From Macrostomum lignano (Eukaryota), in NCBI GenBank assembly GCA_002269645.1, contig NIVC01002466.1, positions 62,001-126,000 on the forward strand: 64,000 nucleotides of DNA, in the 5' to 3' direction. Below, piece by piece: positions 4,140 through 54,884 of the stretch. The notes beneath the pieces were generated by a model. That model saw only the letters and a program-made list of their open reading frames with translations, was not told the DNA's origin and ran no database searches. Positions within the stretch are counted from its first letter, which is position 1. The number at the start of each line of letters is the position of its first letter. The position numbers and the translations under genes were made by a program.

Positions 4140-4468
4140 CCCCAGATCTTCAACTGAGAGCTGCAGCCCTCCCAGATCCCCAGTTGCTGAGAGCTGCAGC
4201 CCTCCCAGATCCCCAGTTGCTAATAGCTGCAGCCCTCCCAGATCCCCAGTTGCTGAGAGCTGCAGCCCTCCCAGATCCCCAGTTGCTAATAGCTGCAGCC
4301 CTCCCAGATCCCCAGTTGCTAATAGCTGCAGCCCTCCCAGATCCCCAGTTGCTGAGAGCTGCAGCCCTCCCAGATCCCCAGTTGCTGAGAGCTGCAGCCC
4401 TCCCAGATCCCCAGTTGCTGAGAGCTGCAGCCCTCCCAGATCCCCAGTTGCTAATAGTTGCAGCCCTC
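4140..4468. repeat. 33-bp minisatellite, ~10 copies
   Basis: Unit AGCTGCAGCCCTCCCAGATCCCCAGTTGCTGAG. Confidence 0.95.
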
Positions 4469-4841
4469 AGGGGTTATCTCAGTTTCTGGGCCGCTTAGCC
4501 ACCCTCTGATGTTCGCGGTGTCGAAGTGCACCAAGAGTTGTGTGCAGCACATCAACTGAAATTCCTATCCAGTCTCCTTTTGCTGGCCTAGCGATTCCCA
4601 AGCGACCTTTTTGTCTATAATTTCTCCCATAAGCTTTCGCCCATAGGCACAAGTTCGGGTTCGGTTTTCGTGTACTTTTATAGCGAACGATGCCCAGACT
4701 GGCTTAGTGTGAAAATTGTTTAGGAAATCCCCTCGCCAACTTTGCAGCCGGTTGTTTACAGGCGGTGGCACCCGGCTGAATTGTCGTTTAGGGACTCCTG
4801 CTAGCTGCCCTTTGCTAATGCAAAAGTTTAGAGAAAAAACT

Positions 4842-6437
4842 ATGGTAGGGAAGCAAGCTCCGAGTACGTCTCGTCTGGGACATTTCTTGCAGGCGATGTG
4901 CAGGTAGTCAGCCAGTGCTCCACACATATTCTCCGCTTCTCTCCCTTCTGTAGGCTGCCCTCCACTTCTTTAGGGTGCCCTCCACTTCTGTAGGCTGCCC
5001 TCCACTTCTGTAGGCTGCCCTCCACTTCTGTAGGCTGCCCTCCACTTCTGTAGGCTGCCCTCCACTTCTGTAGGCTGCCCTCCACTTCTGTAGGCTGCCC
5101 TCCACTTCTGTAGGCTGCCCTCCACTTCTGTAGGCTGCCCTCCACTTCTGTAGGCTGCCCTCCACTTCTGTAGGCTGCCCTCCACTTCTGTAGGCTGCCC
5201 TCCACTTCTGTAGGCTGCCCTCCACTTCTGTAGGCTGCTCCCACTGCCCTTTTGATTTCTGTAGGCTCATCCCCAGTCGGCCGAACTCCAATGAACAATG
5301 ACTCATTCAAACTCTGTTCCAGCCTGCCGCGGAGGACATCAAGGACCCGAAGGCGCCAGCCGTTCGGCCCCCTCTAGACGTGGCCTTCATCGGGCCGCCC
5401 GGCTCTGGCAAAGGCACTCAGGCTCGCCGCTTCGCCGATAAATTCGGCGTGTGCCACGTGGACATGGGCTCGATGCTGCGGTCCGCGGCTGCCAGAAATG
5501 AGCAGGTCTGCGTACTGTCCGATGCGGACACTGGAACAGCGCTGAACCACCCTCTCCAGAAATTTTCGCCCTTCCTCCAAAAAAAATCGCTCTCTCCAAA
5601 AAGAATCGCTCTCTCCAAGAAGAATCGCCCTCTCTTCAAAAAAAGAATCTCTTCAAAGAATTGCCCTCTTTAAAAAAACGCCCCTATCTAGAAAGAATCG
5701 CCTCTTGTCTAGAAAGAATCTCCCGTGTCTAGAAAGAATCGCCTCTTGTCTAGAAAGAATCGCCCTTGTCGAGAGAGAATCGCCTCTTGTCTAGAAAGAA
5801 TCGCCCTTGTCGAGAGAGAATCGCCTCTTGTCTAGAAAGAATCGCCTCTTGTCTAGAAAGAATCGCCCTTGTCAAGGGAGAATCGCCCTTGTGTAGATAA
5901 TCGCCCCAACCGCAATTCCCCCCCCCTCGAAAGTTCAAGGCCAGCATCAACCAGGGCCGGCTCATTGCGGACGATCCGGTGTGCGAGCTGGTGGCGCAGC
6001 AGCTGGACCGGCCAGAGTGCGACCCGGGCATCCTGCTGGACGGCTTTCCGCGCACTTCCGGCCAGGCCGCCAAGTTGGACCAGATGCTGTCCGAGCGGCG
6101 GCGCAGCTTGTCCGCGGTTGTCCAATTCGACATTCCGGATGACGTTGCGACGGACAGGATCACCGGCCGGCTGCACCACCCCGGCTCCGGCAGGGTGTAC
6201 CATCACAGCTTCCAGCCACCGCGCGTGCCCGGACGCGACGATGCAACGGGCGAGTCGCTGACGAAGCGGCCGGACGACTTCCCGGACGTGATGCCAAGGC
6301 GGCTGGCCGCCTACCGCGACCTCATCGGCCCGGTGCTGCAGCGGTACAGCCAGGCCGGCCTGTTGAAGCGTGTCGATGCCAGCAAGCCGGCTGACTCGGT
6401 CTGGAGCACCTTGCAGAGCCTGTTCAAGTCTGGCTGA
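4842..6437 (+). CDS. AK2: Adenylate kinase 2-like (long LID type), copy 1. Model join(4842..4844,5323..5505,5934..6437), ~229 aa
   Basis: P-loop [20 protein letters not shown] motif GRLHHPGSGRVYH...DDATGESLTKRPDD. An ATG|GTAGGG donor plus the TTCCAG acceptor at 5322 give MPAAEDIKD.... The first micro-exon and the intron 2 boundaries are uncertain. Confidence 0.85.
4935..5265. repeat. 20-bp minisatellite in AK copy 1 intron 1
   Basis: Near-perfect TAGGCTGCCCTCCACTTCTG units. Confidence 0.95.
5560..5905. repeat. 21-bp minisatellite in AK copy 1 intron 2
   Basis: AAGAATCGCCTCTTGTCTAGA units, degenerate on the left and homogeneous on the right. Confidence 0.9.
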
Positions 6438-9821: not shown

Positions 9822-11015
9822 TACTGACACCCTGCAGTCCATGCTGACACCCTGCAGTCCATGCTGACCCCTGCAGTCCATGCTGACACCCTACAGTCCA
9901 TGCTGACACCCTGCAGTCCATGCTGACACCCTACAGTCCATGCTGACCCCTTCAGTCCATGCTGGCACCCTGCAGTCCATGCTGACCCCTTCAGTCCATG
10001 CTGACACCCTACAGTCCATGCTGACACCCTGCAGTCCATGCTGACACCCTGCAGTCCATGCTGACACCCTACAGTCCATGCTGACCCCTTCAGTCCATGC
10101 TGGCACCCTGCAGTCCATGCTGACCCCTTCAGTCCATGCTGACACCCTACAGTCCATGCTGACACCCTGCAGTCCATGCTGACACCCTGCAGTCCATGCT
10201 GACACCCTACAGTCCATGCTGACACCCTACAGTCCATGCTGGCACCCTGCAGTCCATGCTGACCCCTTCAGTCCATGCTGACACCCTACAGTCCATGCTG
10301 ACACCCTGCAGTCCATGCTGACACCCTGCAGTCCATGCTGACACCCTACAGTCCATGCTGACACCCTGCAGTCCATGCTGACACCCTACAGTCCATGCTG
10401 ACACCCTGCAGTCCATGCTGACACCCTACAGTCCATGCTGACCCCTTCAGTCCATGCTGGCACCCTGCAGTGCAGTCCATGCTGACTCCCTACAGTCCAT
10501 GCTGACACCCTGCAGTCCATGCTGACACCCTGCCGTTCATGCTGACACCCTACAGTCCATGCTGACACCCTGCCGTTCATGCTGACACCCTTCAGTCCAT
10601 GCTGACACCCTACAGTCCATGCTGACCCCTGCAGTCCATGCTGACACCCTACAGTCCATGCTGACCCCTTCAGTCCATGCTGGCACCCTGCAGTGCAGTC
10701 CATGCTGACTCCCTACAGTCCATGCTGGCACCCTGCAGTGCAGTCCATGCTGACTCCCTACAGTCCATGCTGACACCCTGCAGTCCATGCTGACACCCTG
10801 CCGTTCATGCTGACACCCTACAGTCCATGCTGACACCCTGCCGTTCATGCTGACACCCTACAGTCCATGCTGACACCCTGCAGTCCATGCTGACACCCTG
10901 CAGTCCATGCTGACACCCTGCAGTCCATGCTGGCACCCTGCAGTGCAGTCCATGCTGACTCCCTACAGTCCATGCTGACACCCTGCAGTCCATGCTGACA
11001 CCCTGCAGTCCATGC
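9822..11015. repeat. 20-bp minisatellite, ~1.2 kb
   Basis: CAGTCCATGCTGACACCCTG/A units. Confidence 0.97.
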
Positions 11016-12100: not shown

Positions 12101-12484
12101 CCCCCCTCAAGAGTGCTTTTTCAAAGCAAATCCGGCCGCCAATCTCAATCCCAAAAACGCAGGCGCGTAAACGGTCTGTTAAAAATATCCAGAGCGGGTG
12201 GTATTTGTGGCATCAACAGTGATTTATTTTTCGGTTGTCTGCAGGTGTTTGTTTCAACTGGCCGGGAGGGGGGCAACTCGCCTGGGGGAGTTTTCTGTCA
12301 CAACTAATCTCCCACCTTGATTTCCGCCTTTGTGTCCGGCACATATTGCAATTAGTATTTGCACCTGCTACTGCTTAGACCGGCGACCGCAGCTGCCCTG
12401 CATAAATTGGGGATGAGAGTTTAGTCCTTTTCAATCCTAATTCTCTTGATAGGACTTTAAATCAGCTTTATGAAGCAATGTCAG

Positions 12485-14418
12485 CTTCACAGACAGGCAA
12501 TCACAGTCTCACAGACAGGCAATCACAGCCTCACAGACAGGCAATCACAGCCTCACAGACAGGCAATGTCACCCTCACAGACAGGCAATCACAGCCTCTA
12601 AGATAGGCAATGTCACCCTCACAGACAGGCAATCACAGCCTCACAGACAGGCAATCACAGCCTCACAGACAGGCAATCACAGCCTCACAGACAGGCAATG
12701 TCACCCTCACAGACAGGCAATCACAGCCTCTAAGATAGGCAATGTCACCCTCACAGACAGGCAATCACAGCCTCACAGACAGGCAATCACAGCCTCACAG
12801 ACAGGCAATCATAGACTCACAGACAGGCAATGTCACCCTCACAGACAGGCAATCATAGACTCACAGACAGGCAATGTCACCCTCACAGACAGGCAATCAC
12901 AGCCTCACAGACAGGCAATCACAGCCTCTAAGATAGGCAATGTCACCCTCACAGACAGGCAATCACAGCCTCACAGACAGGCAATCACAGCCTCACAGAC
13001 AGGCAATCATAGACTCACAGACAGGCAATGTCACCCTCACAGACAGGCAATCATAGACTCACAGACAGGCAATGTCACCCTCACAGACAGGCAATCACAG
13101 CCTCACAGACAGGCAATCACAGCCTCTAAGATAGGCAATGTCACCCTCACAGACAGGCAATCACAGCCTCACAGACAGGCAATCACAGCCTCACAGACAG
13201 GCAATCACAGCCTCACAGACAGGCAATCACAGACTCACAGACAGGCAATCACAGCCTCACAGACAGGCAATCGCAGCCTCACAGATAGGCAATTACAGCC
13301 TCACAGACAGGCAATTACAGCCTCACAGACAGGCAATCGCAGCCTCACAGATAGGCAATCACAGCCTCACAGACAGGCAATCACAGCCTCACAGACAGGG
13401 CAATGTCACCCTCACAGACAGGCAATCACAGCCTCACAGACAGGCAATCACAGCCTCACAGACAGGCAATCACAGACTCACAGACAGGCAATCACAGCCT
13501 CACAGACAGGCAATCGCAGCCTCACAGATAGGCAATCACAGCCTCACAGACAGGCAATCACAGCCTCACAGACAGGGCAATGTCACCCTCACAGACAGGC
13601 AATCACAGCCTCACAGACAGGCAATCACAGACTCACAGACAGGCAATCTCAGCCTCACAGACAGGCAATCTCAGCCTCACAGACAGGCAATCACAGACTC
13701 ACAGACAGGCAATGTCACCCTCACAGACAGGCAATCACAGCCTCACAGACAGGCAATCACAGCCTCACAGACAGGGCAATGTCACCCTCACAGACAGGCA
13801 ATCACAGCCTCACAGACAGGCAATCACAGCCTCTCAGATAGGCAATGTCACCCTCACAGACAGGCAATGTCAGCCTCACAGACAGGCAATCACAGCCTCT
13901 CAGATAGGCAATGTCACCCTCACAGACAGGCAATGTCAGCCTCACAGACAGGCAATCACAGCCTCTCAGATAGGCAATGTCACCCTCACAGACAGGCAAT
14001 GTCAGCCTCACAGACAGGCAATCACAGCCTCACAGACAGGCAATGTCAGCCTCACAGACAGGCAATCACAGCCTCTCAGATAGGCAATGTCACCCTCACA
14101 GACAGGCAATCACAGCCTCACAGACAGGCAATCACAGCCTCTCAGATAGGCAATGTCACCCTCACAGACAGGCAATCACAGCCTCACAGACAGGCAATCT
14201 CAGCCTCACAGACAGGCAATCACAGACTCACAGACAGGCAATCTCAGCCTCACAGACAGGCAATCTCAGCCTCACAGACAGGCAATCACAGACTCACAGA
14301 CAGGCAATCACAGCCTCACAGACAGGCAATCACAGCCTCACAGACAGGCAATCACAGCCTCACAGACAGGCAATCACAGCCTCACAGACAGGCAATCACA
14401 GCCTCACAGACAGGCAAT
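12485..14418. repeat. 22-bp minisatellite, ~1.9 kb, ending just upstream of the AK copy 2 splice acceptor
   Basis: CACAGACAGGCAATCACAGCCT units. The array stops ~30 nt before CCCGCAG/CCGCAG acceptors at 14446/14452. Confidence 0.97.
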
Positions 14419-14476
14419 CCAGCGCATTCCCACCCCATCCCGCAGCCGCAGTCTTAACTAATTTCGCTATCGCACA

Positions 14477-15943
14477 ATGGGCCAGTCCTGGGGCAAGCAG
14501 CAGCAGTCGGGCAACGTGAACGCCATGTTCCTCGGGCCGCCGGGCTCCGGCAAGGGCACCCAGTCGGAGCGATTCGTCCGCCACTTCGGTGTCTGCCATC
14601 TGGACGCCGGCACGATGCTCCGCGCCGTAGCCAAGGCGGAGTCGGAGCTCGGCAAGCGGGTGCGCGGTCTCATGAACGAAGGCCGCCTGGTTGACGACCA
14701 GACCATCTGCGAGATCATCGAGCAGAACCTGGACAAGCCCGAGTGCAAGAAGGGCTTCCTGCTGGACGGCTTCCCCCGCACCCAGGCCCAGGCCGAGCGG
14801 CTGGACGACATGCTGGGCCGCCGCCGGCAGCAGCTTAACGGCGTCGTTGAGTTCGCCATCGATGACCGCCTGCTGGAGGAGCGAATCGTCGGCCGCCTGA
14901 TGCACGTCCCCTCCGGCCGGGTCTACCATGAGAAGTTCCGGCCGCCCCAGGTGCCGGGTGAGCTCACGGGGAAGCAAATGGGGAATCTGATTGAGAATCT
15001 GATGGAGAATCTGATAGAGAATCGAATAGGGAATCGAATGGGGAATCTGATGGAGAATCTGATGGGGAATCTGATAGTGAATCGAATGGGGAATCTGATA
15101 AGGACTTGAATAGGGAATCTGATAGGGAATCGAATAGGGAATCGAATGGGGAATCTGATGGAGAATCTGATGGGAAATCTGATAGTGAATCGAATGGGGA
15201 ATCTCATAGGGAGTTGAATAGGGAATTTGATTCGGAAGAAAAACTGGGATAAAGCGGATGGAGAAGACAGACTGGGGAAAACAGATGGAAAAGAGAGACT
15301 GGGGAAAACAGATGGAGAAGAGAGACTGGGGAAAACAGATGGAGAAGACAGACTGGGGAAAACAGATGGAGAAGAGAGACTGGGGAAAACAGATGGAGAA
15401 GAGAGACTGGGGAAAACAGATGGAGAAGACAGACTGGGGAAAACAGATGGAGAAGAGAGACTGGGGAAAACAGATGGAGAAGAGAGACTGGGGGAAACAG
15501 ATGGAGAAGAGAGACTGGGGAAAACAGATGGAGAAGAGAGACTGGGGGAAACAGATGGAGAAGAGAGACTGGGATAAAGCGGATGGAGAAGAGAGACTGG
15601 GGGAAAACAGATGGAGAAGAGAGACTGGGGGAAAACAGATGGAGAAGAGAGACTGGGGGAAAACAGATGGAGAAAAGAGACTGGGGAAAACTTTCCGAGT
15701 TCCAAGCAGCGCCGGTGCCCCGATCCCTGCCGCGCAGGCAAAGACGACGTGACGGGGGAGCCGCTGACGCGGCGGTCGGACGACAACGCTGAGACGCTGC
15801 GCACCCGGCTGGCGCAGTACCACGAGAAGACGCGGCCCCTCACCGACTATTACGGCCGGCGCCACCTGATGCACCGGTTGGACGCGTCCCGGTCTCAGGA
15901 CCAGGTGTGGCAGGACCTGCTGCGCATCTTCAAGCAGGCCTAA
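14477..15943 (+). CDS. AK2: Adenylate kinase 2-like, copy 2. Model join(14477..14957,15738..15943), 228 aa
   Basis: [45 protein letters not shown]|[17 protein letters not shown] canonical phase-1 GTGAGC...GCGCAG intron restores the frame exactly. Confidence 0.93.
14978..15690. repeat. Two adjacent minisatellites (12-bp, then 27-bp) filling the AK copy 2 intron
   Basis: GGGAATCTGAT(G/A) units at ~14978-15235. GGGGAAAACAGATGGAGAAGAGAGACT units at ~15244-15690. Confidence 0.95.
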
Positions 15944-18320: not shown

Positions 18321-19882
18321 TACCCTATCTCCCCCCCCCCCTATCTCAATGCAAGAGGGGGGGCAGTAGTTGCCCCTTCTGAATCATTGTTCAAAGCTTT
18401 GATTTTTACTTCTTTTTGTCTTAAATTCAACAAAATGTGAACGACAAATATTTAAATTTGTGGCCCGCGAGCCGGAGTTCCCTGCTGCACATCCTGCAGG
18501 TCAAAGAGCGTCATAAAAAACTCAGACAACGCAGCAGCCTCTGCCTTCGGCAGATTTCCTCTGGCAAAAAGAAAAGGGCAAAGACCCAGCAGCGAGTCTT
18601 GGGAGACGGCTGCATAGACGGAGAAGGGAAGGTGTGGCATTGTTTGCACCTTGGCAGCTCAATTTATTATATAACAATTGTGGCAAACCGAATTGCGAAT
18701 TGTATAGGCTCGGAATTAGGGGAGCGATTTTATTAAAGCAAAACGAAAATAACAAATACAAAAGATATTCAGAAGCAACAGAAAATAATGAAGAGAAAAC
18801 GGAAAAATATGAGTTGTCAAAAATATGCGGTGATGATGTGAAATTGCAAAACTTGCCACTGGAGTTCGTTGAGTTTCTAGGAAAATGCGAGTCAGCCCTG
18901 TCTTAGCCTGCCTGCAAATCAGGACTCCAATAGTTACAGAGGCCGGGCCTCAATCGCTTACATGTGCCAGCTAGCTGGTGGGCAGGGGCGAGTATTCATT
19001 TTACGGATCAAGGTGGAAGACCTGCGCAAATCAAACAATATAAAAGCAATTAATAATCAATAATCGGAAGAGAAGTCAGGCAAAACCACAGATACTAAAA
19101 TAACTTGATGGGCCACTCAGGCGTACATACTTAGTAAAACAGCTTTCTACTTTCAGTTCAGTAGCAAAGAAGAATACATAAGCTATATTATTAAAATAAA
19201 GGCAGCTGAGATTACTTTGATAAGTTGCCCAAGCTTGCTAATTGGTTCAGCCATAATGTACATTGAAATGTACATGGCAGCTTTAGGCTGGAATTCCGAG
19301 GAAGGCAATAAAAACTAGGTGGCGGCCGGGTAGAGGTTCTATTTAGAGTTGGAGGGTTTAAGCCTTGTCTTTAAAAAATACATTAAAATGCTTCAGTTTA
19401 ACTTACTACTGAACTGAAAGTAGCTTACACGCAAATGTGCTGAGTGGCCCATTTAGTTATTCTGGTATCTGTGGGCAAAACCGAAGCAAAAACATCAAGA
19501 GAAGTGCGGGATGCTCTGCTATTACAGTATGATATTGCAAAAAGGCGGGGAGGAGCCTGGACATTCGCAGCGATGGCGCTGGTTGATAGGCATAGATATG
19601 TAAATCTCGTACAATTGGTTGAAAAAATAATGAAATATAAATCCAACAGCCTAAATATTAATAAATTTATGATAGAAATTTCTGTTTAAAAAATTGTAAA
19701 TCTCGCAGCACGCGGTTAGCAGAAAAAAAGCACAACTGAAAAAAAGCCCAGCTGTATGGGAAATGAATGCCACTGATATCAATAATAGATGTATAAATAT
19801 AGAGTGATGCAATGCAAATACGAGGCCGCGCAGCGAGAGCGCTACAGAAGCCAAGGAATATTAAAAGCAAAAGAAAACTTGT

Positions 19883-27483: not shown

Positions 27484-29456
27484 ATTCTTGGATTCGATAA
27501 GGAAATGCATTGTTCGATTCCTTTTTTCCACAAGGTTTATAAGAATCATGAAAAATATTATGTAAGTATATTAACTCATGTTTGAGCAGCGTAAATATCA
27601 AGTAGCACCTTGAAAGGCTGGATTTAATGTGGTCCTTATTATTTAATTTCTGAATTTACCTCATTTTTGCTAGAAGGTATCTAATAAAGTTATCAGTTCA
27701 GGCAAAGGCAGTATAGTAAGTTTAAACAGTATTGTCATAATTAAAAAACCGATTAAACTACGACAGCCCAAATTATGAAAAAAAACTAAAATGCTATCAA
27801 TGTGATAGTGAATCCACTTTGGCATGTGAAATGGTCATAAATTATTTTTTATTTGAAATTAATGAGAAGGCATTGTAACTACAGCTTTATTTCTGACTCT
27901 CTGTACTTAGGAGTTCGTTATCAACATTCGCAACGAAGAGGGATGCTGCAAAATTATACACCGGCGCTACAATCAGTTTTTTAATTTTCAGGTAGCTATA
28001 GTTTGCATATATTTTTCTGTGTTCAATGTTTTGATATGTTTAACAAATACAGTGTAAATATAACTTAATTTCATAATTGCTCAATTTTTCAGCATCAAAT
28101 AATGGAACTTTTCCCAAAAGAGGCTGGTTGTAAACACCCAGAGGAGCGATTGATCCCAGTGCTGCCAGGAAAAGTTTTAATCCGTACAAAAAAGGAGCGC
28201 GAGGTAGCAGCTAAAAGGCGACCATTACTGGAGGAATACTGCAATGTAAGTATGGCTAATACTGCACTTAGCTAAAACTTTAGAAGTGCAATTTTACTAA
28301 GCTCAAACTTTTTCCTCTCTTACCAGAGCATTTTTCAGCTACCAGATTTCATTCAGCGGCACCGACACGTCATTCAGTTCTTTTCCTGCTCCGAGGACGA
28401 CGCTAGAAAATCTTCTCAGAAAGAGTGAGCGTGCACTTTTATTTAGCAAGCTTTCTAGTATGAGAATCAGACGGTCTACTCTTGTCAAAAAGAAGCTGCC
28501 CCTTTCAGGCAAAACCATGCATGCTTGCCAACTTCAGGCGGCCGCAGGCAACTCCGGCAGACATTTCAACTCCGGCGGTTGCGCCGCTCTATTTAGTGAC
28601 TCGCGGCCACTCCTGTCGCGACGCTCACGGTGTTGAATTCGGCGCTGAGGCCGGCGACGCGGCGTCGGTGCTGCGACGGGCCGACACCGGCTACTGGCTT
28701 GTGGAGGTCGGCGGCCGGGTCGGCTGGTTCCCCACGCAGTTCCTCACGCCAGCGACGCGAGCCGACTCGCCGAGCTCACCGTCCGAGCCGGTGTCGGACT
28801 CCACCGATGCGTTCGTCGTCTGTGTCAGCAACTGCGCAACGTCGGATTCGGAGCGGCTGACGCAGCCGGCGCTCGGCGATTTGGTGGTGGCCGAGTCGCG
28901 CTCGGAGTCCGGCTGGTGGACGGTGCGCTGGGGCCACCAGCGGCTAACTGTGGCCGCCGTCGGCCTGCGCCCAGTTGCCGAGCAGCTGCTGGACCGCGGT
29001 CTCCTTGGTGGACAGCTTCGTCCCGCTGATCGAGCTGCGGCGGCGCCTCCTCCGAGACCGCCCCCACCGCCGGCAAAGCCGACGCTTCCGACGCCACCGC
29101 CGCTGCCACCGCCGCCGCCTCCAGTAAAATCGCCTCATCCGCCACCGCCAATGCCGCCTCTTCCGATGCAGATTCGAGAACAGACTGCAGTAACAGCGGT
29201 AAGAGCTCTTGGATACAACTGCTGTGCTTCTCAGAAGCTGCCGTTTCTGACGGTCAGTTATGACCATAGAGGGCCATTCAACCGTCAGCTGCAGACATCT
29301 GACCTCCTCCTTCAAATCTGCTCCAGCCATCGCCATCGGCAGCTCCTCTGCCTCCGAAAGCGGCTCCCAGGTGGCCTGCCCGAGGCGATTCGGCGGCGTC
29401 GTCAGCTGCTCTGCCTCATCCGGCGACAGCGTCCGAGGCTGGACAGGCCGGTATAG
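27484..29456 (+). CDS. PX-SH3-SH3-proline-rich protein (p47phox/NOXO1/Tks family). Exons ~27484or27535..27561, 27911..27991, 28093..28245, 28327..28424, 28538..29456; start not defined
   Basis: Spliced PX domain ILGFDK..KYY|EFVINI..IHRRYNQFFNFQ|HQIMELFPKEAG..ERLIPVLPGK..LEEYCN|SIFQLP matches p47phox/Tks5 PX motifs (RRY, FP.EAG, IIP.LPGK, EYC). SH3 motifs GYWLVEVGGRVGWFPTQFL and SGWWTVRW, then poly-Pro. Phases are consistent. Confidence 0.85.
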
Positions 29457-29689
29457 CCAAGACAGGACAAGAAAGCCAGCAGCTTCATCGTCCGTCAGGC
29501 CGGGTCAAATCCATGGCAAGCAGATTTGAGGGGGTCATCTGATTTGACTTCCTAAAGCAACTCTACTGAATCAGAGGTGAAGGAGTGAACAAAATCGTAT
29601 GTGAACTTGAGAGACCCCGTTTGCTAGCCAGATTTTTGTTCTATGGTGCAATTTCTGAATAACTCACTGGCTAGACAGCAACACATCCG

Positions 29690-30228
29690 GCTAGTAACAC
29701 ATCCGGCTAGTAACACATCCGGCTAGCAACACATCCGGCTAGCAACACATCTGGCTAGCAACACATCTGGCTAGCAACACATCTGACTAGCAACACATCC
29801 GGTTAGCAACACATCTGACTAGAAACACATCCGGCTATTAACACATCCGGCTAGCAACACATCTGACTAGCAACACATCTGACTAGCAACACATCCGGCT
29901 AGCAACACATCTGACTAACACACATCTGACTAGAAACACATCCGGCTATTAACACATCCGGCTAGCAACACATCTGACTAGAAACACATCCGGCTAGTAA
30001 CACATCCGGCTAGCAACACATCTGACTAAAAACACATCCGGCTAGTAACACATCCGGCTAGCAACACATCCGGCTAGCAACACATCCGGCTAGCAACACA
30101 TCTGACTAGAAACACATCCGGCTAGTAACACATCCGGCTAGCAACACATCCGGCTAGCAACACATCCGGCTAGCAACACATCTGACTAGAAACACATCCG
30201 GCTAGCAACACATCCGGCTAGCAGCACA
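29690..30228. repeat. 16-bp minisatellite (duplicated at 44370-44790)
   Basis: CAACACATCCGGCTAG / CAACACATCTGACTAG units. Confidence 0.95.
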
Positions 30229-30825
30229 ACCAAGAGCAAATGTCATAGACCCATTTATCTGCACAGTTAAATCAAAATGATTTATCACTTTTTTCAATCG
30301 ATTGCTGTCGCAAAAAAAGTTGAATTTAACTGATATTTTTTTATCTTTCAATGAGTCAACCTAGTATGTTATTCGATCGAATGAAATACACTCCAAATGT
30401 TGTCTATCGCTGCCTTCTTTTGCTTGTTTTGTAGGCGCCATATTCCGAAAAAGTAAGAAAAAAATGTCAGGACGCATCGCTGTTTCTGTGCTCTGAATTT
30501 CCGTGCTTCAATTGTCGTGCACAGTCTCTCACCCCTCATCTCAATGTAGCTCCTGTTGTGTTTGACTTGAGCTCCGATAATTTGCTAGTAAAAAGCTGCG
30601 ATTTGAGCTGCTCGCGATTTGCTATATATTTATGCTAGCGTACTGCACTTTAACAAGTTAAATATCCGTTGAAACCGCGCACGAGAGAAACAACCAAATA
30701 CTGTACGATGAGCGATGAGTCTGTGGATGACGCAATTTAGACCGAGAGTAAACGACAATGGGTGACGCATAGCGTACTTTAAACTAACCCCCAAGCACAG
30801 GTATGCGTCCGCCATAACAGCTCCC

Positions 30826-31015
30826 TTCATCTCACTTACTTCCCTCCCCTCATCTCACTTACTTCCCTCCCTTCATCTCACTTACTTCTCTCCCTTCATC
30901 TCACTTACTTCCCTCTCTTCATCTCACTCTTACTTCCCTCCCTTCATCTCACTCTTACTTCCCTCCCTTCATTTCACTCTTACTTCCCTCCCTTCATCTC
31001 ACTCTTACTTCCCTC
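30826..31015. repeat. Pyrimidine-rich 23-25-bp minisatellite (expanded at 45388-45772)
   Basis: CTTCCCTCCCTTCATCTCACT(CT)TA units. Confidence 0.9.
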
Positions 31016-31494
31016 CGCAAATTTGCACCTCCCTACCCCCTGCTCCTTCGCTCAACCCACTAAGAGGTCTCGCCTCATCTGCTGCGCCTGCAGTCTTTAA
31101 GCTCCCTCTATCCCTCCCTCTTACTATTCTTTTTCTGCATTCAAATTTTCTATTTTCTACTATTGGCAATAAATATATTCAATACCTTTGCTCCTCTTTT
31201 CCATTAGGCACATGCGCCTCATCTTTTGTTGATAAAAAAACGAAATAATAATGATGTGTCGCCATCCTGGCGCAACGCCTTCGGTGAAATCGTCTCACAA
31301 GCAGCAGTAAAGCAGTTCTGCTCATTTCGCTGCTGACGAAAAATGCCACGACGAATGTTTTTGTCACAAGCTCGAAATGAAAATGTGGCGGCTCCCGGAA
31401 TCGAACCAAAATTCGTGACTGTAAGGTCTAGGTTTGCGTGCTGAAAAAAAGGTGATTCAATATATACTCTTATATCTGTCAGTCATATTGGGGT

Positions 31495-33874: not shown

Positions 33875-35449
33875 AGATATTGGAAATGTTTTGCTTGAGA
33901 CTTCGAATTTATTGCAAATGGAGAGCGCCACTGAAAGCTGGGAACTTTTTCTGCTGTCGATTCCCCTCAACTCTTCGCGGATGCGTCGGATAAATACTCG
34001 TCCAGACAACAGCAATCAACTTGAGTACCTATCAGTGCATTTGTCCGTAATTACCGTGTCTACTGATTTGGTGGAAGTCTGGCTTGATTGTTCCTTGCGG
34101 CTGAGCAATTCAGTTTTTCATTCAATTTATGATTGAATCAATTTTTATTTCTGTCTTGGTTTTGCTATATTTTAGCTTTTACTTGACAACCAACGTTAAT
34201 AGTTGATGGCGACTGAACAGTCCATGAGCACTGTGTTTATAATTTAATTTTTTTGCCATCTTGCCCTAGGTTCTGAAAACTTCCGTTCACTTTAAGTCAT
34301 GTTCCTGGACAAAATGGCTTAGCTGAGAGATCTTCGCTCGTTGACGAGTTTTTCAAATCGTCTCATTCGACTGAGCCTGGACACGCACATGGATCTCACG
34401 CATTCGACAGTGCAATAGCTCGTTAAACTCTGAGCAGTTCTCCCCCCGGAGTCCGTTGCGGGCGAGAGCGGGCAGGCTCCTGCCACAATTGCACTAAACA
34501 GAAATGAAAAATTTGAACTACCGCTTGAACTTTGAACTACTGTTTTGCTACCGCAGCACGTTTATTTTCTGAGCAAAAACTCGCGCATTTCCCGGTGAAC
34601 CCGTCAGACTCCGGTCTGGCGGTGGTTAGCTGCAGAAAACTGCAGATGGAATTTGTCCCGTCATGCACTGTCGTTCTACTTCCCTGATCAGTAGTGTGAA
34701 TCGCATCCAACCTGCAAGTTTCTATCCTATCTCCCTTTTAGCTTGTCTCCCTTCCCTTCTCCTTACCCTCCCCCATTGACAGTCACCACGGTGTCCTGCA
34801 GCATGCGACTTCGATTTCATAGTGGTTAACGCAAGCAAGAGTGACAGCCTCAACCCCAAGTATGTTGCTATATTTGACCTGCTACAGTGGATTCTACAAG
34901 CTATGCAGTTGCACAGAATCTTGCATATCCGATTCAAATGTTAAGAATCTCAAGTGAGCATCGTAGCTTGCGGCTATCATAGCCAGCTGTACTTTAGAAA
35001 CTCGAGTGTACCTCCGCACGATCGGTACACACAATCCAGCCGTTTCTGGACAGCACAAGAAAAAGATGCGCGCTAAGATTTGTGAGGCCCCCACCCCCGA
35101 CGGCACAAACCACGCGCAAACAAAACAAAAGGAAAACAACAAAAAGTGTTCATGCAACGTGCAAAAGTCCTAACCAAACAGCGGACAGAAAGTTCGTCAT
35201 CAGGTGGCCGTGTAAAAATCCCGCGGCCGTGCCACAGAAGGACGGGAAACCAAGTATCTTGGAAAAGAGGATGTGAACTTAAGAGTCAAAATGGAGCCCG
35301 AAAATGGAGCCCCGGTCCCGATTTCTCTACGCCAAGCTTAATTGACGAGAATGCCAAGATAAACGCTCTTTTTACAAGCGTATATGTTTGTAGGAAGATT
35401 CTCTTTCACCTTCATCATCAACAGCAGCTGAACTCCGATACTCATGCTG

Positions 35450-44148: not shown

Positions 44149-46924
44149 CCAAGACAGGACAAGAAAGCCAGCAGCTTCATCGTCCGTCAGGCCGGGTCAA
44201 ATCCATGGCAAGCAGATTTGAGGGGGTCATCTGATTTGATCTCCTAAAGCAACTCTACTGAATCAGAGGTGAAGGAGTGAACAAAATCGTATGTGAACTT
44301 GAAAGACCCCGTTTGCTAGCCAGATTTTTGTTCTATGGTGCAATGTCTGAATAACTCACTGGCTAGACAGTAACACATCCGGCTAGCAACACATCCGGCT
44401 AGCAACACATCCGGCTAGCAACACATCCGGCTAGCAACACATCTGACTAGCAGTACATCCGGCTAGCAACACATCTGACTAGAAACACATCCGGCTAGTA
44501 ACACATCCGGCTAGCAACACATCCGGCTAGCAACACATCTGGCTAGCAACACATCTGACTAGCAGTACATCCGGCTAGCAACACATCTGACTAGCAGTAC
44601 ATCCGGCTAGCAACACATCTGACTAGCAACACATCTGACTAGCAGTACATCCGGCTAGCAACACATCTGGCTAGCAACACATCTGGCTAGTAACACATCC
44701 GGCTAGCAACACATCCGGCTAGCAACACATCCGGCTAGCAACACATCTGACTAGAAACACATCCGGCTAGCAACACATCCGGCTAGCAGCACAACCAAGA
44801 GCAAATGTCATAGACCCATTTATCTGCACAGTTAAATCAAAATGATTTATCACTTTTTTTACTCGATTGCTGTCGCAAAAAAAGTTGAATTTAACTGATA
44901 TTTTTTTATCTTTCAATGAGTCAACCTGGTATGTTACTCGATCGAATGAAATACACTCCAAATGCTGTCTATCGCTGCCTTCTTTTGCTTGTTTTGTGGG
45001 CGCCATATTCCGAAAAAGTAAGAAAAAAATGTCAGGACGCATCGCTGTTTCTGTGCTCTGAATTTCGGTGCTTCAATTGTCGTGCACACTATCTCACCCC
45101 TCATCTCAATGTAGCTCCTGTTGTGTTTGACTTGAGCTCCGATTATTTGCTAGTAGAAAGCTGCGATTTGAGCTGCTCGCGATTTGCTATATATTTATGC
45201 TAGCGTACTGCACTTTAACAAGTTAAATATCCGTTGAAACCGCGCACGAGAGAAACAACCAAATACTGTACGATGAGCGATGAGTCTGTGGATGACGCAA
45301 TTTAGACCGAGAGTAAACGACAATGGGTGACGCATAGCGTACTTTAAACTAACCCCCAAGCACAGGTATGCGTCCGCCATAACAGCTCCCTTCATCTCAC
45401 TTACTTCCCTCCCCTCATCTCACTTACTTCCCTCCCTTCATCTCACTTACTTCTCTCCCTTCATCTCACTTACTTCCCTCCCCTCATCTCACTTGCTTCC
45501 TCCCTTTATCTCACTCTTACTTCCCTCCCTTCATCTCACTTACTTCCCTCTCTTCATCTCACTCTTACTTCCCTCCCTTCATCTCACTCTTACTTCCCTC
45601 CCTTCATTTCACTTACTTCCCTCCCTTCATCTCACTCTTACTTCCCTCTCTTCATCTCACTCTTACTTCCCTCCCTTCATCTCACTCTTACTTCCCTCCC
45701 TTCATTTCACTTACTTCCCTCCCTTCATCTCACTCTTACCTTCCTCCCTTCATCTCACTCTTACTTCCCTCCGCAAATTTGCACCTCCCTACCCCCTGCT
45801 CCTTCGCTCAACCCACTAAGAGGTCTCGCCTCATCTGCTGCGCCTGCAGTCTTTAAGCTCCCTCTATCCCTCCCTCTTACTATTCTTTTTCTGCATTCAA
45901 ATTTTCTATTTTCTACTATTGGCAATAAATATATTCAATACCTTTGCTCCTCTTTTCCATTAGGCACATGCGCCTCATCTTTTGTTGATAAAAAAACGAA
46001 ATAATAATGATGTGTCGCCATCCTGGCGCAACGCCTTCGGTGAAATCGTCTCACAAGCAGCAGTAAAGCAGTTCTGCTCATTTCGCTGCTGACGAAAAAT
46101 GCCACGACGAATGTTTTTGTCACAAGCTCGAAATGAAAATGTGGCGGCTCCCGGAATCGAACCAAAATTCGTGACTGTAAGGTCTAGGTTTGCGTGCTGA
46201 AAAAAAGGTGATTCAATATATACTCTTATATCTGTCAGTCATATTGGGGTCATGCTGTCCGAGGCCCTGTCTGACCGCCAGAGGGCAGACCTTTAGAGTA
46301 CCGAGACATGGATTCCAACAGGGTTGCACTCAAGTAGAAAGAAAATGCCGCTTACACTACGCATTCGAGATTGGGGACGAGCGAGGCATTTACATAACAC
46401 TTCATTGCCGGCCCGTCCAAGCGACCTGTTGCGCCGTCGGCGACTCCAGCTGGATGGCCACATCATCCATTTGTTCTGGCCAGAGTTTATTTAGGAGGTG
46501 CGGCTGCTTTCGCCGGTGAAGGTAGCCTATAAAGGCGCGAACAGGTGGGCCATGGATTCTACCTGAGGCCCCATATCGAGCGCCAAGTGACGCTGTTTTG
46601 AGGGACCTTCTGGGACAACGCGTATTGTTATTTTGCGTTGACAGACAATTGCTGCAATAAGAATTAATGGACTGCATGTAGAATAAGAAAGTGTTTAGCT
46701 CAGGCTGAATCGGAGACACGCTCAAGGGTCAATCAAGGATCAAGGGTCAATATATTATCCTTGATGTAATTCTTGTCTGCATCAAGACACTCGATATTCA
46801 AAAACTGTGAACCATTTCAAAAATGTCTCTTCATACGAGCGTGTGTATAGTGTGTTCTTCAGGTTTAGTGTGTCCACACAAGTTGCTTGGAGCAGTAATA
46901 TTTTCCCATTTCCGTATCCCAAAA

Positions 46925-48630
46925 CTAAACCAACTCCATAATCTGCTCAACAGTGAGCATTTCTTTGAAGATGCCGAGTACTTTGATTCGGCCGTACAAA
47001 AACTTTGTTGGCGCATTATGCCAGTTGAAGCCAAGGTAGAGGCAGCCGATTCGCTCGGGATCCGTGCCGTACGTGCTGGCGGAGGTGTAGAAGGTGGTGT
47101 CCAGCTTCACACCGTTCACCACAAAGTAGCCGGATGTCGGGCCGATGGCCATGGCAAAGTGGATTGCAGAGCCGCTGGGATAGGTGTAAGTCGATCCAGC
47201 AGCGACGGACGTTGCAACCTGCCAATCGCCAGTCAGGGAGTTCAGGAACCAGCCTTCGTTGCCAACGGACTGTTCGTTGATGGCACCGTTGTGGTTGTTG
47301 TTGTTGGAGCAGCTGGCGAACATTGCGAGCTCGGTTCGATACTTTACAGTGCCCCGAACGAAAGTGACAAAGAAGGTGAATTGCGTCCCAGCCCTGAAAG
47401 GTGTCGGTGGGATGCTTTTAGATGAGAAAAGGAGGGTCAGTGAAAAAGTTAAATTTAAATTCAAAATACAAAAAGAAAAAACGAACCTGACAAGCGAGTC
47501 GAAGCCAATGTGCGACAGGTTGAGCCTCACGAACTGCGATATGCTCAACGGAATCTGGACGCCGTCGGGTCCGATGTCGATCGGTGTGTTGTTGACGGCC
47601 GGCATGACGGTCGGGTTGGCGAGGTTCAGCATGCTCGAGTTGAAGGTGTAGAAGGCGAGCATTGATGAGGCCCAGGTGCGCGCTTTGTGCCACATGCTGC
47701 AGCCTTGGACGCCGTGGAGGCGGCTGTTCAGGTAGAGGCTGAGCGATCCCTCAAAGCAGCCGGACGCGTTGAAGACGAAGAACTCGCAGGTCGGACGCGA
47801 CGCGCAGGCGTGGGCGCAAACGTCCAGGTGATGCGGCTGCGACCAAGCGAGGTGGAGCACAGGCGGGACATTGGCGGCCGCAGTGTGGGTGCACCAGGTC
47901 TCGCTGGAGAAGTGGCTTCGCCAACGGACCGACACGGCGAGAGGCGAGAAGTCGTCGGCTGGGTAGTCGGCGGCAGCGATGTGGGCGAAGTAGGCGGAGG
48001 CATTGAACGACACGCAGCGGACGGCGGGTCCGGCGGCTTTGGGGGCAGCGGCTGCGGCGTCGAGAATCGGCGCAAACAGGGAGCCGTCCGCCGCCAGCCG
48101 CGTGCACCATCGGAAGCAGAGGAGCTCGGCCAGGTTTTCAGCCACACTCGTAGAATTAAGGACCAGAAACGGCGCTTCGAGTGTTTTGTTGTCTTCGCAA
48201 TTCTCTAAAAGCAAATTTTTTTATTCGAAACGCGGTTCTTTGGGTTCCTGCTTAGCACTAAATTTGTGTTTTGAATAAATAAAAATATGTTACCCAGAGC
48301 AGTGTCCATCTTGGCGATCAGTTTGCAACTTCCGGGCGTCAGCTGAGCCGACCGGTTTCGCAGAAGCCGCCACTTATTGTTGGAAAGCGACTCGTTGCCG
48401 TGGCAGGCGATGCAGCCGCTGGTCCTGGCGCAGTGCGCTGCGCATTCGATTTTACTCGCCGCTTCCGAGGCTTCAGCAAGCGACTCCTCAGTGCTGCAGA
48501 GCCCGTTAGTCACCGAGAAGTGAGCTGTGGCCGCCTGATCCACAGTTGCCGAGGCTGCACTGAGCGCCAGGAGAGTCAGAAGAAACGGCTGCACCAAGAG
48601 GTGCTGTCTGTCACAGTGAAATGTTTTCAT
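46925..48630 (-). CDS. Secreted PAN + LamG-like protein, copy B. Model complement(join(46925..47414,47487..48204,48294..48630))
   Basis: Constant +14756 offset from copy A. ORF and splice sites intact, with few amino-acid changes. Confidence 0.8.
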
Positions 48631-50445
48631 AGATATTGGAAATGTTTTGCTTGAGACTTCGAATTTATTGCAAATGGAGAGCGCCACTGGAAGCTGGGAA
48701 CTTTTTCTGCTGTCGATTCGCCTCAACTTTTCGCGGATGCGTCGGATAAATACTCGTCCAGACAACAGCAATCAACTTGAGTGCCGATGAGGGCATTTGT
48801 CCGTAATTACCGTGTCTACTGATTTGGTGGAAGTCTGGCTTGATTGTTCCTTGCGGCTGAGCAATTCAGTTTTTCATTCAATTTATGATTGAATCAATTT
48901 TTATTTCTGTTTTGGTTTTGCTATATTCTAGCTTTTACTTGACAACCAACGTTAATAGTTGATGGCGACTGAACAGTCCATGAGCACTGTGTTTATAATT
49001 TAATTTTTTTGCCATCTTGCCCTAGGTTCTGAAAACTTCCGTTCACTTTAAGTCATGTTCCTGGACAAAATGGCTTAGCTGAGAGATCTTCGCTCGCTGA
49101 CGAGTTTTTCAATTGTCTCAAGTGACGCTCATTCGACTGAGCCTGGGCACGCACATGGATCTCACGCATTCGACAGTGCAATAGCGCGTTAACCTTAGCG
49201 CGTTAAGGCTCCTGCCACAATTGCACTAAACAGAAATGAAAAATTTGAACTACCGCTTGAACTTTGAACTACTGTTTTGCTACCGCAGCACGTTTATTTT
49301 CTGAGCAAAAACTCGCGCATTTCCCGGTGAACCCGTCAGACTCCGGTCTGGCGGTGGTTAGCTGCAGAAAACTGCAGATGGAATTTGTCCCGTCATGCAC
49401 TGTCGTTCTACTTCCCTGATCAGTAGTGTGAATCGCATCCAACCTGCAAGTTTCTATCCTATCTCCCTTTTAGCTTGTCTCCCTTCCCTTCTCCTTACCC
49501 TCCCCATTGACAGTCACCACGGTGTCCTGCAGCATGCGACTTCGATTTCATAGTGGTTAACGCAAGCAAGAGTGACAGCCTCAACCCCAAGTATGTTGCT
49601 ATATTTGACCTGCTACAGTGGATTCTACGAGCTATGCAGTTGCACAGAATCTTGCATATCCGATTCAAATGTTAAGAATCTCAAGTGAGCATCGTAGCTT
49701 GCGGCTATCATAGCCTGCTGAACTTTAGAAACTCGAGTGTACCTCCGCACGATCAGTACACACAATCCAGCCGTTTCTGGACAGCACAAGAAAAAGATGC
49801 GCGCTAAGCTTTGTGAGGGCCTCTTTTGCCGGTCGCCGGCATGGGTTATAGGGCTCCAGCCTGTCAACACCACCAATAAATCTGTTGTACGACACGATCC
49901 TGTCTAAATTGTGTAGCTCGTGAGAGCAGAGAATTTAGAGGAAAAAATCGCAAAATATATTTTGGCATGCACGACAACTGCGGAGCGATGATATAGCCAG
50001 CGATGGAAAAGTTAAAATGACTCACCCATCTGGAGTGGCGGCATGCACAGACTACAGCGAGATGAAAGTAATAAGAGAGCAGCCCCCACCCCCGACGGCA
50101 CAAACCACGCGCAACCAAAACAAAAGGAAAACAACAAAAAAGTGTTCATGCAACGTGCAAAAGTCCTAACCAAACAGCGGACAGAAAGTTCGTCATCAGG
50201 TGGCCGTGTAAAAATCCGGCGGCCGTGCTACAGAAGGACGGGAAACCAAGTTTCCTGGAAAAGAGGATGTGAACTTAAGAGTCAAAATGGAGCCCGAAAA
50301 TGGAGCCCCGGTCCCGATTTCTCTACGCCAAGCTTAATTGACGAGAATGCCAAGATAAACGCTCTTTTTACAAGCGTATAAGTTTGTAGGAAGATTCTCT
50401 TTCACCTTCATCATCAACAGCAGCTGAACTCCGATACTCATGCTG

Positions 50446-53400: not shown

Positions 53401-54884
53401 GAAACCATCACCACCACCACGTTTTGAGCCGCCAGCCACTGCCGATGCCGCCTAACAACGTTGGTTAGCAAGAAGACGTAATCTACGTGGCCACGGCAGT
53501 CCAAGCAGCAACGCCGGTGTCCATCAGCCTGGCGACCATCAAAGCGGCCTCCAACCAAGATGCCACAGTCCAAGCCGCGCCTCACGGCATCCGCAGTGTC
53601 AGGTTCGGGACAGGAGCAACCTGAACCCGAAGCGTGAAGGCTGCACACCGTCCCCCATGAGTTGTCTAAGCTCGACGGCCTGCTGCTACGTCTGGGCCAG
53701 ATCTTCATGCCTACAGCACTGCGCTACCGGCGCCTGCAGCTGGCGCACCAAGGTCACCAGGGCATTAGAGAGACAAGGTGTGCAAGCCAAGATGTGGTGG
53801 CCCAGCATGCGAGCATCAGTACAGGCGCACGAGGTGGCCTGCCTGAGCTGCCAGATCTGCACCCGCGAGACCACGCCAAAGGCGACGCCGCTCAAGCCGA
53901 CCAAACTACCTGCGGCGCCCTGGCTGGAGCTTGGCATGGACATCATCGGGCCCGTCAACGGCAAGTCGCTGCTCGTCTGCACGGATCACTTCTCGCGCAT
54001 CCCACTGGTCGAGGTCATGTCGAGCACCACCGCCGCGGCAGTCATCCGCATGCTGCGGAATTGGTTCAGCATCTTCGGGCAGCCCATGAAAGTGACGACC
54101 GGCAACGGCCCGTCCTTCGCGTCGGCTGAGTTTAGCAGCTTCTTGGTGGACCAAGGCTCCAGGCACCACCGGATCACTCCGCTGTACCCACAGGCCAACG
54201 GCGCTACGGAAAGGTGCAACCAGAGACTCAACAAGGCCATCCGTACGGCCGTGGCCGAAGGCAGGGACTGGACGGCAGCAATCGACGAGTACCTGGCTGC
54301 GTACAGACGCACTCCGCACAGCGCTACTGGGATCGCGCCCGCCAGCGTTCTGTTCGGGCGGCAGATCCCCGACACGATCCCCAACCTCCAGCACTCGCAG
54401 CCGGTGGACGCAACGAGAGCAGCCATCAAGGACAAGGACCAGCTGTCCAAGGAGAAGATGAAGCGCTACGCCGACCAAAGGGCCAAGGCAGCAGACCACT
54501 ACATTCGGCCAGGAGACCGCGTCCTGCGATGGCTGCAGTCCAGACAAAAGGCCGGCGCCTTCTACGACTCAACGCCGTGGGTCGTGTCCAAAGTGCTCGA
54601 AGACTCGCTGATCACGCAGCGCGACGACACCACCTGCTGCTGGCACGCCACGCAGGTCAAGCGGCTGCCAGAAGCGCCAGACCAGCCAGCCGGGCCGGCG
54701 CCGCAGCCGCCTGGCATGCCAGGAAGCTTGGACAAACCGGAGCCACCGATCGCGGCTCGGCCGCACCTGCGGCAGGCCAAAGGCGGAGACAAGATCTACA
54801 AAGAAGTTGATTCGATCAGCTTCGATTCCCAATTCCCAATCATTGGTTCGATTCCCAATCATTTTTATTCCACTCGGGGAGAAT
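50446..54884 (+). mobile_element. Internally deleted Ty3/Gypsy pol, copy B, with nested LINE
   Basis: Same RT/RH/integrase motifs as copy A. The integrase frame (53657-54919 ORF) is less disrupted. Confidence 0.9.
51423..53380 (+). mobile_element. Nested LINE, copy B (RNase H segment deleted)
   Basis: Matches 36427-38748 but lacks the ~37938-38305 equivalent. Confidence 0.9.

Follow-up and report, generated by a model that had tools for sequence, protein, structure and literature searches.

A minisatellite-filled intron at a novel position in a shortened adenylate kinase gene of Macrostomum lignano

How a coding sequence acquires an intron, and at what cost to the protein, is the question raised by an adenylate kinase (AK) gene of Macrostomum lignano. 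The gene, copy 1 (5323-6437), lies on the plus strand of a 64,000-nt stretch of contig NIVC01002466.1 (assembly GCA_002269645.1, positions 62,001 to 126,000 of the forward strand), which was analysed as a whole and is called the window here, together with a second AK gene on the same strand, copy 2 (14477-15943). The initial annotation had read the intron of copy 1 as a recent insertion, intronised through cryptic splice sites in former coding sequence at the cost of a few residues, or else as an intron with a non-canonical 3' splice site. In this study, we show that 5506-5933 is an ordinary U2-type GT-AG intron, already annotated, whose removal gives SAAARNEQ|FKASINQGRL, and that this short form is, according to transcript-derived gene models, the product of copy 1. 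On balance, we regard as probable an account in which this canonical intron, with ends that resemble codons by chance, was gained jointly with a loss of codons in an ancestral gene and was later lost through complementary DNA (cDNA) in an intronless sister gene, P0003 (BOX15_Mlig031169g3).

Copy 1 belongs with the mitochondrial-type adenylate kinase AK2, of which it is a fast-evolving paralog specific to Macrostomum. The best matches of its spliced protein are other M. lignano proteins (98% and 87% identity), and its closest relative among distinct genes is P0003, which lies at a different locus and shares 58% identity with it. In a neighbour-joining tree, copy 1 and P0003 form a clade in 100% of 50 bootstraps; this clade is nested in a Macrostomum AK2 clade with equal (100%) support, and copy 2 is its sister. 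Copy 2 is 52% identical to copy 1 over the 153 residues aligned by tblastn and 47% identical across the whole coding sequence (CDS).

An ordinary GT-AG intron and a shortened product

The sequence facts from which the initial annotation started are correct. Exon 1 runs into the intron as GAG CAG|GTC TGC|GTA, with GT at 5506 and 5512, and the 3' boundary reads CGA AAG|TTC, with AG at 5932-5933. A C9 run at 5918-5926 is followed by T at 5927, and the 416 nt from 5512 to 5927 begin with GT and end with CT. Six gene models bear on the choice among these sites, namely P0001, P0002 and P0364 from WormBase/UniProt and P0362 (on two contigs) and P0363 from GenBank. All six read NEQ|FKAS, which corresponds to the intron 5506-5933, and none uses the 5512 donor or the 5511|5928 join; GT-AG splicing thus takes the place of the non-canonical 3' site that had been considered. 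Three of the six models lie on GenBank contigs and are transcript-built, the GenBank annotation having been derived solely from RNA-seq and de novo transcripts with StringTie, TACO, TBONE and TransDecoder (PMC5730564).

A second, independently assembled copy of copy 1 (L004, on NIVC01004001.1) has the same intron boundaries, GT and AG, around an intron of 581 nt. Its GenBank gene spans 1,265 nt for a product of 227 amino acids; the remainder, exactly 581 nt, equals the stretch between CAG|GT and AAG| at this locus and therefore fits exactly one intron with these ends. The exons of the two copies differ at 5 of 687 bases (nonsynonymous divergence, dN, 0.002; synonymous divergence, dS, 0.024), and their introns are 94% identical over the aligned columns, with extra repeat units in L004. 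The L004 intron ends in ...C9TCCT|CGAAAG, with CT and not AG ahead of CGAAAG. A sequencing error that hides an AG directly before 5928 is thus not supported, and an assembly error at this point is unlikely.

The cis introns of M. lignano follow a consensus with the donor GT[G/A]AG and the acceptor CAG (PMC8629364). Both sites of copy 1 depart from it (donor GTCTG, acceptor AAG), so both are weak, which is a measure of strength and not a requirement for membership; the intron of copy 2 has GTGAG and CAG. When compared with CAG|GTAAGT, the donor at 5506 matches at 6 of 9 positions and that at 5512 at 3 of 9. A pyrimidine tract, TTC9TC, is present 6 nt ahead of the 3' AG in both genomic copies and differs in length between them.

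The initial annotation was right that canonical splicing costs residues relative to AK2, as the protein is 4 residues shorter than a nearly invariant length. The spacing from the P-loop to DGFPR is 69 residues in 204 of 208 AK2 homologs, and shorter spacings occur only in the copy 1 models (65) and in P0003 (64); the copy 1 intron lies at the edge of this length gap, and a 4-residue gap is likewise left here when the short form is aligned with bovine AK2 (1AK2). The short form nevertheless models confidently as an adenylate kinase. AlphaFold, run with a 40-sequence alignment, predicts it with a mean predicted local distance difference test score (pLDDT) of 92.8 and a predicted template modelling score (pTM) of 0.84, and places a helix at 53-63 and, after a one-residue break, a second helix at 65-72 that spans the junction Q66|F67. 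The Pfam domains PF00406 (ADK) and PF05191 (ADK_lid) are recognised in the translation, and the AK2 motifs (P-loop GxPGxGKG, DGFPR, LID and RxDD) are intact. The dN/dS ratio is ~0.08 between the two genomic copies, where substitutions are few, and ~0.3 against P0003, which suggests that copy 1 is under purifying selection. These ratios and the confident model are the indirect signs that the predicted protein may be catalytically active.

The idea that the intron ends are former codons was based on the join of 5511 to 5928, which gives ...NEQVCRKFKASINQGRL and aligns without gaps to copy 2 (14528-14980). The alignment itself is real, and its weight as evidence is nil, because reading any set of four in-frame codons without a stop into the protein from the two ends of the intron brings it back to the canonical length by construction. 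We therefore compared the residues with a profile of the 204 AK2 homologs that have the 69-residue spacing. Columns 31-34 of this profile hold L (189/204), G (203/204), K/R/Q and E/R/K; VCRK scores -5.2 bits on them, with its Cys on the Gly column, and a score as high or higher is reached by 6.7% of tetrapeptides drawn at random from the six-frame translation of the window, before correction for the 5 possible splits. At the DNA level, GTC TGC CGA AAG matches the CTC GGC AAG CGG of copy 2 at 5 of 12 positions. GTCTGC and CGAAAG are merely the ends of the intron, and their reading as Val-Cys and Arg-Lys is due to chance. A gapless fit obtained by reading into both ends of an intron consequently needs a profile-based control and a check against paralogs.

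An intronless sister gene and the origin of the intron

The sister gene bears on the age of the shortening. P0003 is intronless, with 720 uninterrupted bases for 239 amino acids, and its genomic DNA is without 5 residues at the same spot (LRGMSNNGS|VKLQTEQGRL). Its AAT GGC AGC|GTG AAA pairs codon by codon with the AAT GAG CAG|TTC AAG of spliced copy 1, from which it has diverged to a dS of 1.16. A "recent" birth of the intron is at odds with these data, since the intronless sister is already without the residues in question and matches the spliced form. The comparison with intronless relatives, by which the initial annotation had proposed to put itself to the test, turns out largely against it; P0003 has no equivalent of VCRK, and only the more distant copy 2 keeps the residues. 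The shortening either predates the split of copy 1 and P0003 or occurred twice at one spot. If it came before the split, a coding signal could not have survived in neutral intron ends at a dS above 1, and if the shortening in P0003 was separate, the coding signal is still not statistically visible.

The position of the intron is novel, which agrees with the intron birth that had been proposed. Exon mapping placed the AK2 introns of Diadema at GKGAQ|, QAEK|LD and KDD|ITGEP, those of Rhodnius at the same three sites, at MDAG|Q and near the C-terminus, and those of C. elegans at HLATG|D, QAEK|LD and two C-terminal sites. The copy 1 position is found in none of these genes, nor in copy 2 or P0003, which points to a lineage-specific intron gain. 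Copy 2 has its single intron elsewhere. Both copy 1 and P0003 are without any of the ancestral AK2 introns, and this fits a history with cDNA-mediated steps.

The most economical account of these data, we infer, is that the gene ancestral to copy 1 and P0003 gained the intron and lost 4-5 codons at the same time. An insertion into the coding sequence may have been excised imprecisely, or the repair of a break may have deleted codons outright and left filler DNA; both have been discussed as routes of intron gain (PMC3443670). P0003 would later have lost the intron through cDNA, which is the accepted main intermediate of intron loss (PMC3443670), either by reverse-transcriptase-mediated intron loss or by retroposition of the spliced mRNA, and this step would have frozen the spliced junction in its DNA. 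The copy 1 intron would since then have changed by expansion and contraction of its minisatellites. P0003 has some of the features expected of a retrocopy in that it is intronless, matches the spliced mRNA of its parent and sits at an unlinked locus.

Several points weigh against this account. The junction is known through transcript-derived models only, and the window's own copy is unannotated, the annotation being that of its 99.3%-identical twin. P0003 is short by 5 residues and not by 4, so that one extra codon indel is required. The placement of the gap is ambiguous over ~7 columns, and HMMER puts it two residues upstream of the intron; "the same spot" accordingly means within this zone of ~7 columns. 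Among about 160 domains, from a representative search that returned mostly multi-domain kinases, two unrelated kinases (P0294 and P0351) also have this loop shortened, which makes a separate deletion in P0003 possible, though unparsimonious. Orthologs of copy 1 and P0003 in other species, including other Macrostomum, were not found in a large protein collection. The P0003 locus shows neither a poly(A) stretch after the 3' untranslated region nor a target-site duplication, and its spliced-leader-like remnant (CGGTCT, 34 nt before an in-frame ATG) scores 8 against a background with a mean of 5.7 and a 99th percentile of 9; such marks of a retrocopy are expected to be erased at a dS above 1. Finally, simple retroposition does not predict the satellite family that the intron and the flanks of P0003 have in common, which is described below.

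The main rival reverses the order of events. A short, intronless ancestor would have lost the codons first, and much later a GT...AG piece of minisatellite would have entered copy 1 at CAG|TTC and been spliced precisely, with no residues lost to the intron. This agrees with a P0003 that is both short and intronless, with intron ends that themselves provide GT and AG in a context (CAG|) like a proto-splice site, with the weakness of both splice sites, with a fast-changing intron, whose length is 428 nt in one genomic copy and 581 nt in the other, and with the tolerance of shortening of the loop in P0294 and P0351. However, it needs a coincidence of position, as a random intron site lands in the gap zone of ~7-8 codons within the 228-codon CDS in about 3% of cases, or ~1 in 40 when only AG| sites are counted, and the insert comes without target-site duplication, terminal inverted repeats or further copies in the window and the five loci sampled. 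We consider it a real possibility, but a minority one. The model of the initial annotation fares somewhat worse and appears distinctly unlikely. It posits a recent 416-nt insertion (5512-5927) into a full-length copy 1, with cryptic exonic sites at 5506 and 5933 that cost VCRK and with a separate loss in P0003. Restoring 5506-5511 and 5928-5933 does yield a spacing of exactly 69, R and K do fit columns 33-34, and novel position and non-consensus sites at both ends are as this model would have them. Yet the likeness of VCRK to the profile, with Cys in place of Gly, is at the chance level per split with five splits to choose from, few DNA positions match copy 2, a frame-compatible GT and AG would have had to pre-exist within 6 nt on either side of the insertion, and each of the two sister genes would have had to shorten separately at one spot, within a stretch of otherwise nearly invariant length.

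Two further alternatives concern the boundaries rather than the history. Were the main product full-length through GT...CT splicing (5512-5927), or longer by 2 residues through the 5512 donor, the former join would restore the canonical spacing and the latter GT would be in frame with the 5933 acceptor. Both are very improbable, given that neither junction occurs in any gene model, that cis introns follow GT[G/A]AG and CAG, that the 5512 donor is so poor a match to the consensus, that intronless P0003 encodes the short form directly and that this form is modelled with high confidence. We give almost no credence to an assembly artefact, in which an error in the C9 homopolymer hides an AG or shifts the boundary, or in which the intron is a misassembled repeat. 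The assembly is PacBio-based and the homopolymer does lie at the boundary, but NIVC01004001.1 has the same 5' end and, once more, a 3' end without AG before CGA, and transcript-based models are found on three contigs. The canonical intron with its joint ancestral origin thus remains the reading that we prefer.

Satellite content, gene structure and surroundings

About three quarters of the intron consists of minisatellite, preceded at the 5' end by ~45 unique bases (Table 1). Neither target-site duplications nor terminal inverted repeats are present at 5506/5933 or 5512/5927, and when 5506-5933 was compared with the window and five loci by short-word BLAST, the orthologous site was the only match. 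No Rfam family is hosted by the intron; the sole match is at the chance level and lies in exon 2.

In the window, the core AGAATCGCC is present 10 times, always within the copy 1 intron, where ~0.7 occurrences would be expected by chance window-wide, and 71 and 107 times in two loci that carry P0003 (L001 and L002). At P0003 it forms three arrays that flank the gene immediately up- and downstream in the same orientation. When the 23 arrays of the window were compared with the 9 arrays of each P0003 locus, only the intron array and the three P0003-flanking arrays, at both loci, shared at least 3 recurrent 9-mers, and all other pairs shared at most 1. Within the window and the five loci, only this 9-12-nt satellite core recurs, around P0003. 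The last unit of the intron matches the unit just downstream of P0003 in 26 of 34 columns, and the order is alike at both places, with units of the 19-nt type first and the C9-bearing unit last. This link, seen in the window and the sampled loci, may be a coincidence, and that the intron DNA and the P0003-flanking arrays represent one satellite lineage seems unlikely to us. If they did, P0003 would derive from the spliced mRNA as a processed copy, inserted into a duplicate of the parental intron, or the intron would have been seeded by break repair from ancestral flanking satellites. Pyrimidine-rich, AG-ending minisatellite units would then be raw material for intron birth in this genome. A retrocopy nested in its parental intron would predict decayed AK exon remnants, and tblastn at E <= 50 found none outside the P0003-flanking arrays. 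Elsewhere in the window, the arrays 4154-5238, 9824-11015 and 12475-14423 have many gene-strand units (e.g., CCCTCCACTTCTGTAG, CACCCTGCAG and CCTCACAGACAG) in which a pyrimidine run is followed by AG; they are acceptor-like in appearance.

Table 1. Features of copy 1, copy 2 and the satellite arrays (window positions unless a locus is named)
Feature	Position	Strand	Remarks
TTCCAG, likely spliced-leader trans-splice acceptor	5317-5322	+	fits [T/C]TNCAG motif
Copy 1 coding exon 1	5323-5505	+	ends SAAARNEQ / CAG
Sole cis intron of copy 1	5506-5933	+	428 nt, phase 0, GTCTGC...CGAAAG
Second in-frame GT, possible minor alternative donor	5512-5517	+	TGC|GTACTG; would add Val-Cys
19-nt minisatellite	5550-5644	+	~5 copies, unit CTCCAAAAAGAATCGCTCT
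20/21-nt minisatellite	5672-5897	+	~11 copies, unit AGAAAGAATCGCC[C/TC]TTGTCT; copy number differs in L004
Terminal degenerate unit	5893-5927	+	TAGATAATCGCCCCAACCGCAATT + C9T; polypyrimidine tract of 3' splice site
CGAAAG, intron 3' end with used AG	5928-5933	+	earlier taken as former codons Arg-Lys
Copy 1 coding exon 2	5934-6437	+	FKASINQGRL...SLFKSG, stop at 6435-6437
AK copy 2 (P0122), canonical-length AK2	14477-15943	+	exons 14477-14957 and 15738-15943
Single intron of copy 2	14958-15737	+	GTGAGC..CGCAG, phase 1 in Gly of VPG|KDD
AGAATCGCC-core arrays, window	5550-5927		same orientation as at P0003
AGAATCGCC-core arrays, L001	5255-5903, 6861-7111, 10037-11368		same orientation
AGAATCGCC-core arrays, L002	5045-5902, 6853-7463, 10417-12433		same orientation

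Removal of the intron restores a single open reading frame (ORF); the spliced CDS of 684 nt encodes a full AK, and retention would truncate the frame at a stop at 5671-5673 (retention ORF 5380-5673). The label "intron 2" used earlier is probably a misnomer, because the boundary 5322/5323 (TTCCAG|CCT) fits a trans-splice acceptor, which leaves copy 1 with one cis intron. In M. lignano, the trans-splice acceptor motif is [T/C]TNCAG and the 35-nt spliced leader ends in ATG (PMC8629364). The reading frame of copy 1 is closed by a stop at 5299-5301 and contains no ATG upstream of 5380 and none ahead of the P-loop. The mature mRNA would start at 5323, and the ATG that ends the spliced leader is in frame with its CCT GCC GCG. 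At the twin locus, the GenBank CDS is annotated as 5'-partial and begins 3 nt past the AG of the equivalent acceptor, and P0003 has a similar layout, with a TTTCAG|CCA acceptor (L001 5995-6001) and no ATG of its own at the 5' end of its ORF. The spliced-leader ATG is in frame with the ORF of P0003 as well as with that of copy 1, and it probably provides the start codon of both genes. A spliced-leader gene was not found in the window. Stretches at ~33890-33920 and 48640-48680 (plus strand) and at 19800-19850 (minus strand) have a partial likeness to the 3' half of the spliced leader, e.g., GAGACTTCGAATTTATTGCAAATG with a local score of 13 of 35; they were rejected as spliced-leader genes, and the likeness may be due to chance.

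Copies 1 and 2 are ~8 kb apart on the same strand, and the WormBase model P0364 (567 amino acids) fuses them, which suggests read-through or polycistronic transcription that is resolved by spliced-leader trans-splicing. The intron of copy 2, likewise filled with minisatellite (14969-15691), is displaced by 11 nt, in the upstream direction, from KDD|xTGEP, the AK2 intron conserved in metazoans; the offset could be the result of intron sliding or replacement. In a third haplotype or homeolog (L005; NIVC01001616.1, 1-10000), copy 1 was not seen within 10 kb upstream of copy 2. This locus carries two copies of the satellite block that matches 11.0-14.4 kb of the window, so copy 1 may be farther off or absent.

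A locus taken from the same contig and assembly (L003) is 100% identical to the window over the 1,201 bases that were compared. The window as a whole is dense in minisatellite arrays with units of roughly 16-60 nt (56 rows from Tandem Repeats Finder), which fits the published description of a genome with 15% tandem and simple repeats (PMC5730564). Arrays and a 13-nt repeat at 29677-31016 and 35288-35312 are found again at 44372-45772 and 50284-50308, at an offset of ~14.7-15 kb, indicating a tandem segmental duplication within the window. An ORF of 420 amino acids at 53657-54919 on the plus strand, which is not on record as a called gene, contains an integrase core domain (rve, E 7e-10) and is probably the remnant of a retroelement or transposon. 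Three other ORFs, at 57465-58241 (plus), 28482-29456 (plus) and 46925-48214 (minus), match Fibrinogen_C (E 3e-22), SH3 and, weakly, Laminin_G_3, and are likely exons of other genes.

Comparison with known systems

As the intron is canonical and already annotated, nothing fundamental changes. Few intron gains in animals are well documented, and how they come about is disputed (PMC3443670). With an intron at a new position, a clade-specific change in length and an intronless sister that keeps the spliced junction, copy 1 would represent a natural example, on a small scale, of an "imprecise" gain and a subsequent loss through cDNA, which the transgenesis available in M. lignano and its sequenced relatives make testable.

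Among solved structures, the best relatives of copy 1 are the AK2 enzymes 1AK2 and 2C9Y (E ~1e-56). Copy 1 has the P-loop, DGFPR, the LID motif GRxxHxxSGRxYH and RxDD in common with them. In contrast to AK2, its nucleoside monophosphate (NMP)-binding domain is short by 4 residues where the second helix begins, and R-N-E stands ahead of the gap in place of the usually conserved S-G-S.

Of the described routes of intron evolution, copy 1 resembles the imprecise gain of an intron from a foreign or repetitive insertion or from the repair of a double-strand break (PMC3443670). The novel position, the setting in a paralog, the repetitive body unrelated to the gene, the weak sites and the small change in coding length at the insertion point are all alike. 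It differs in that flanking short direct repeats, target-site duplications and terminal inverted repeats were not found at the locus, nor a donor element in the window and the five loci sampled, and diagnostic scars of an insertion are not expected to survive an event of this age (dS above 1). Intronization via latent splice sites, as summarised in PMC3443670 with reference to Irimia et al. (2008), was the idea behind the initial annotation, in which formerly coding bases are removed together with the intron. In copy 1, however, no more than 12 of the 428 intron nucleotides could be of coding origin, their likeness to codons is at the chance level, and the intronless sister is without them. 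P0003, for its part, resembles the products of reverse-transcriptase-mediated intron loss and processed retrogenes, being intronless, at another locus, without ancestral introns and in agreement with the spliced copy 1 mRNA. It departs from a typical processed retrogene in having no poly(A), target-site duplication or significant spliced-leader remnant, and in being one codon shorter than the spliced copy 1 whose junction it appears to preserve.

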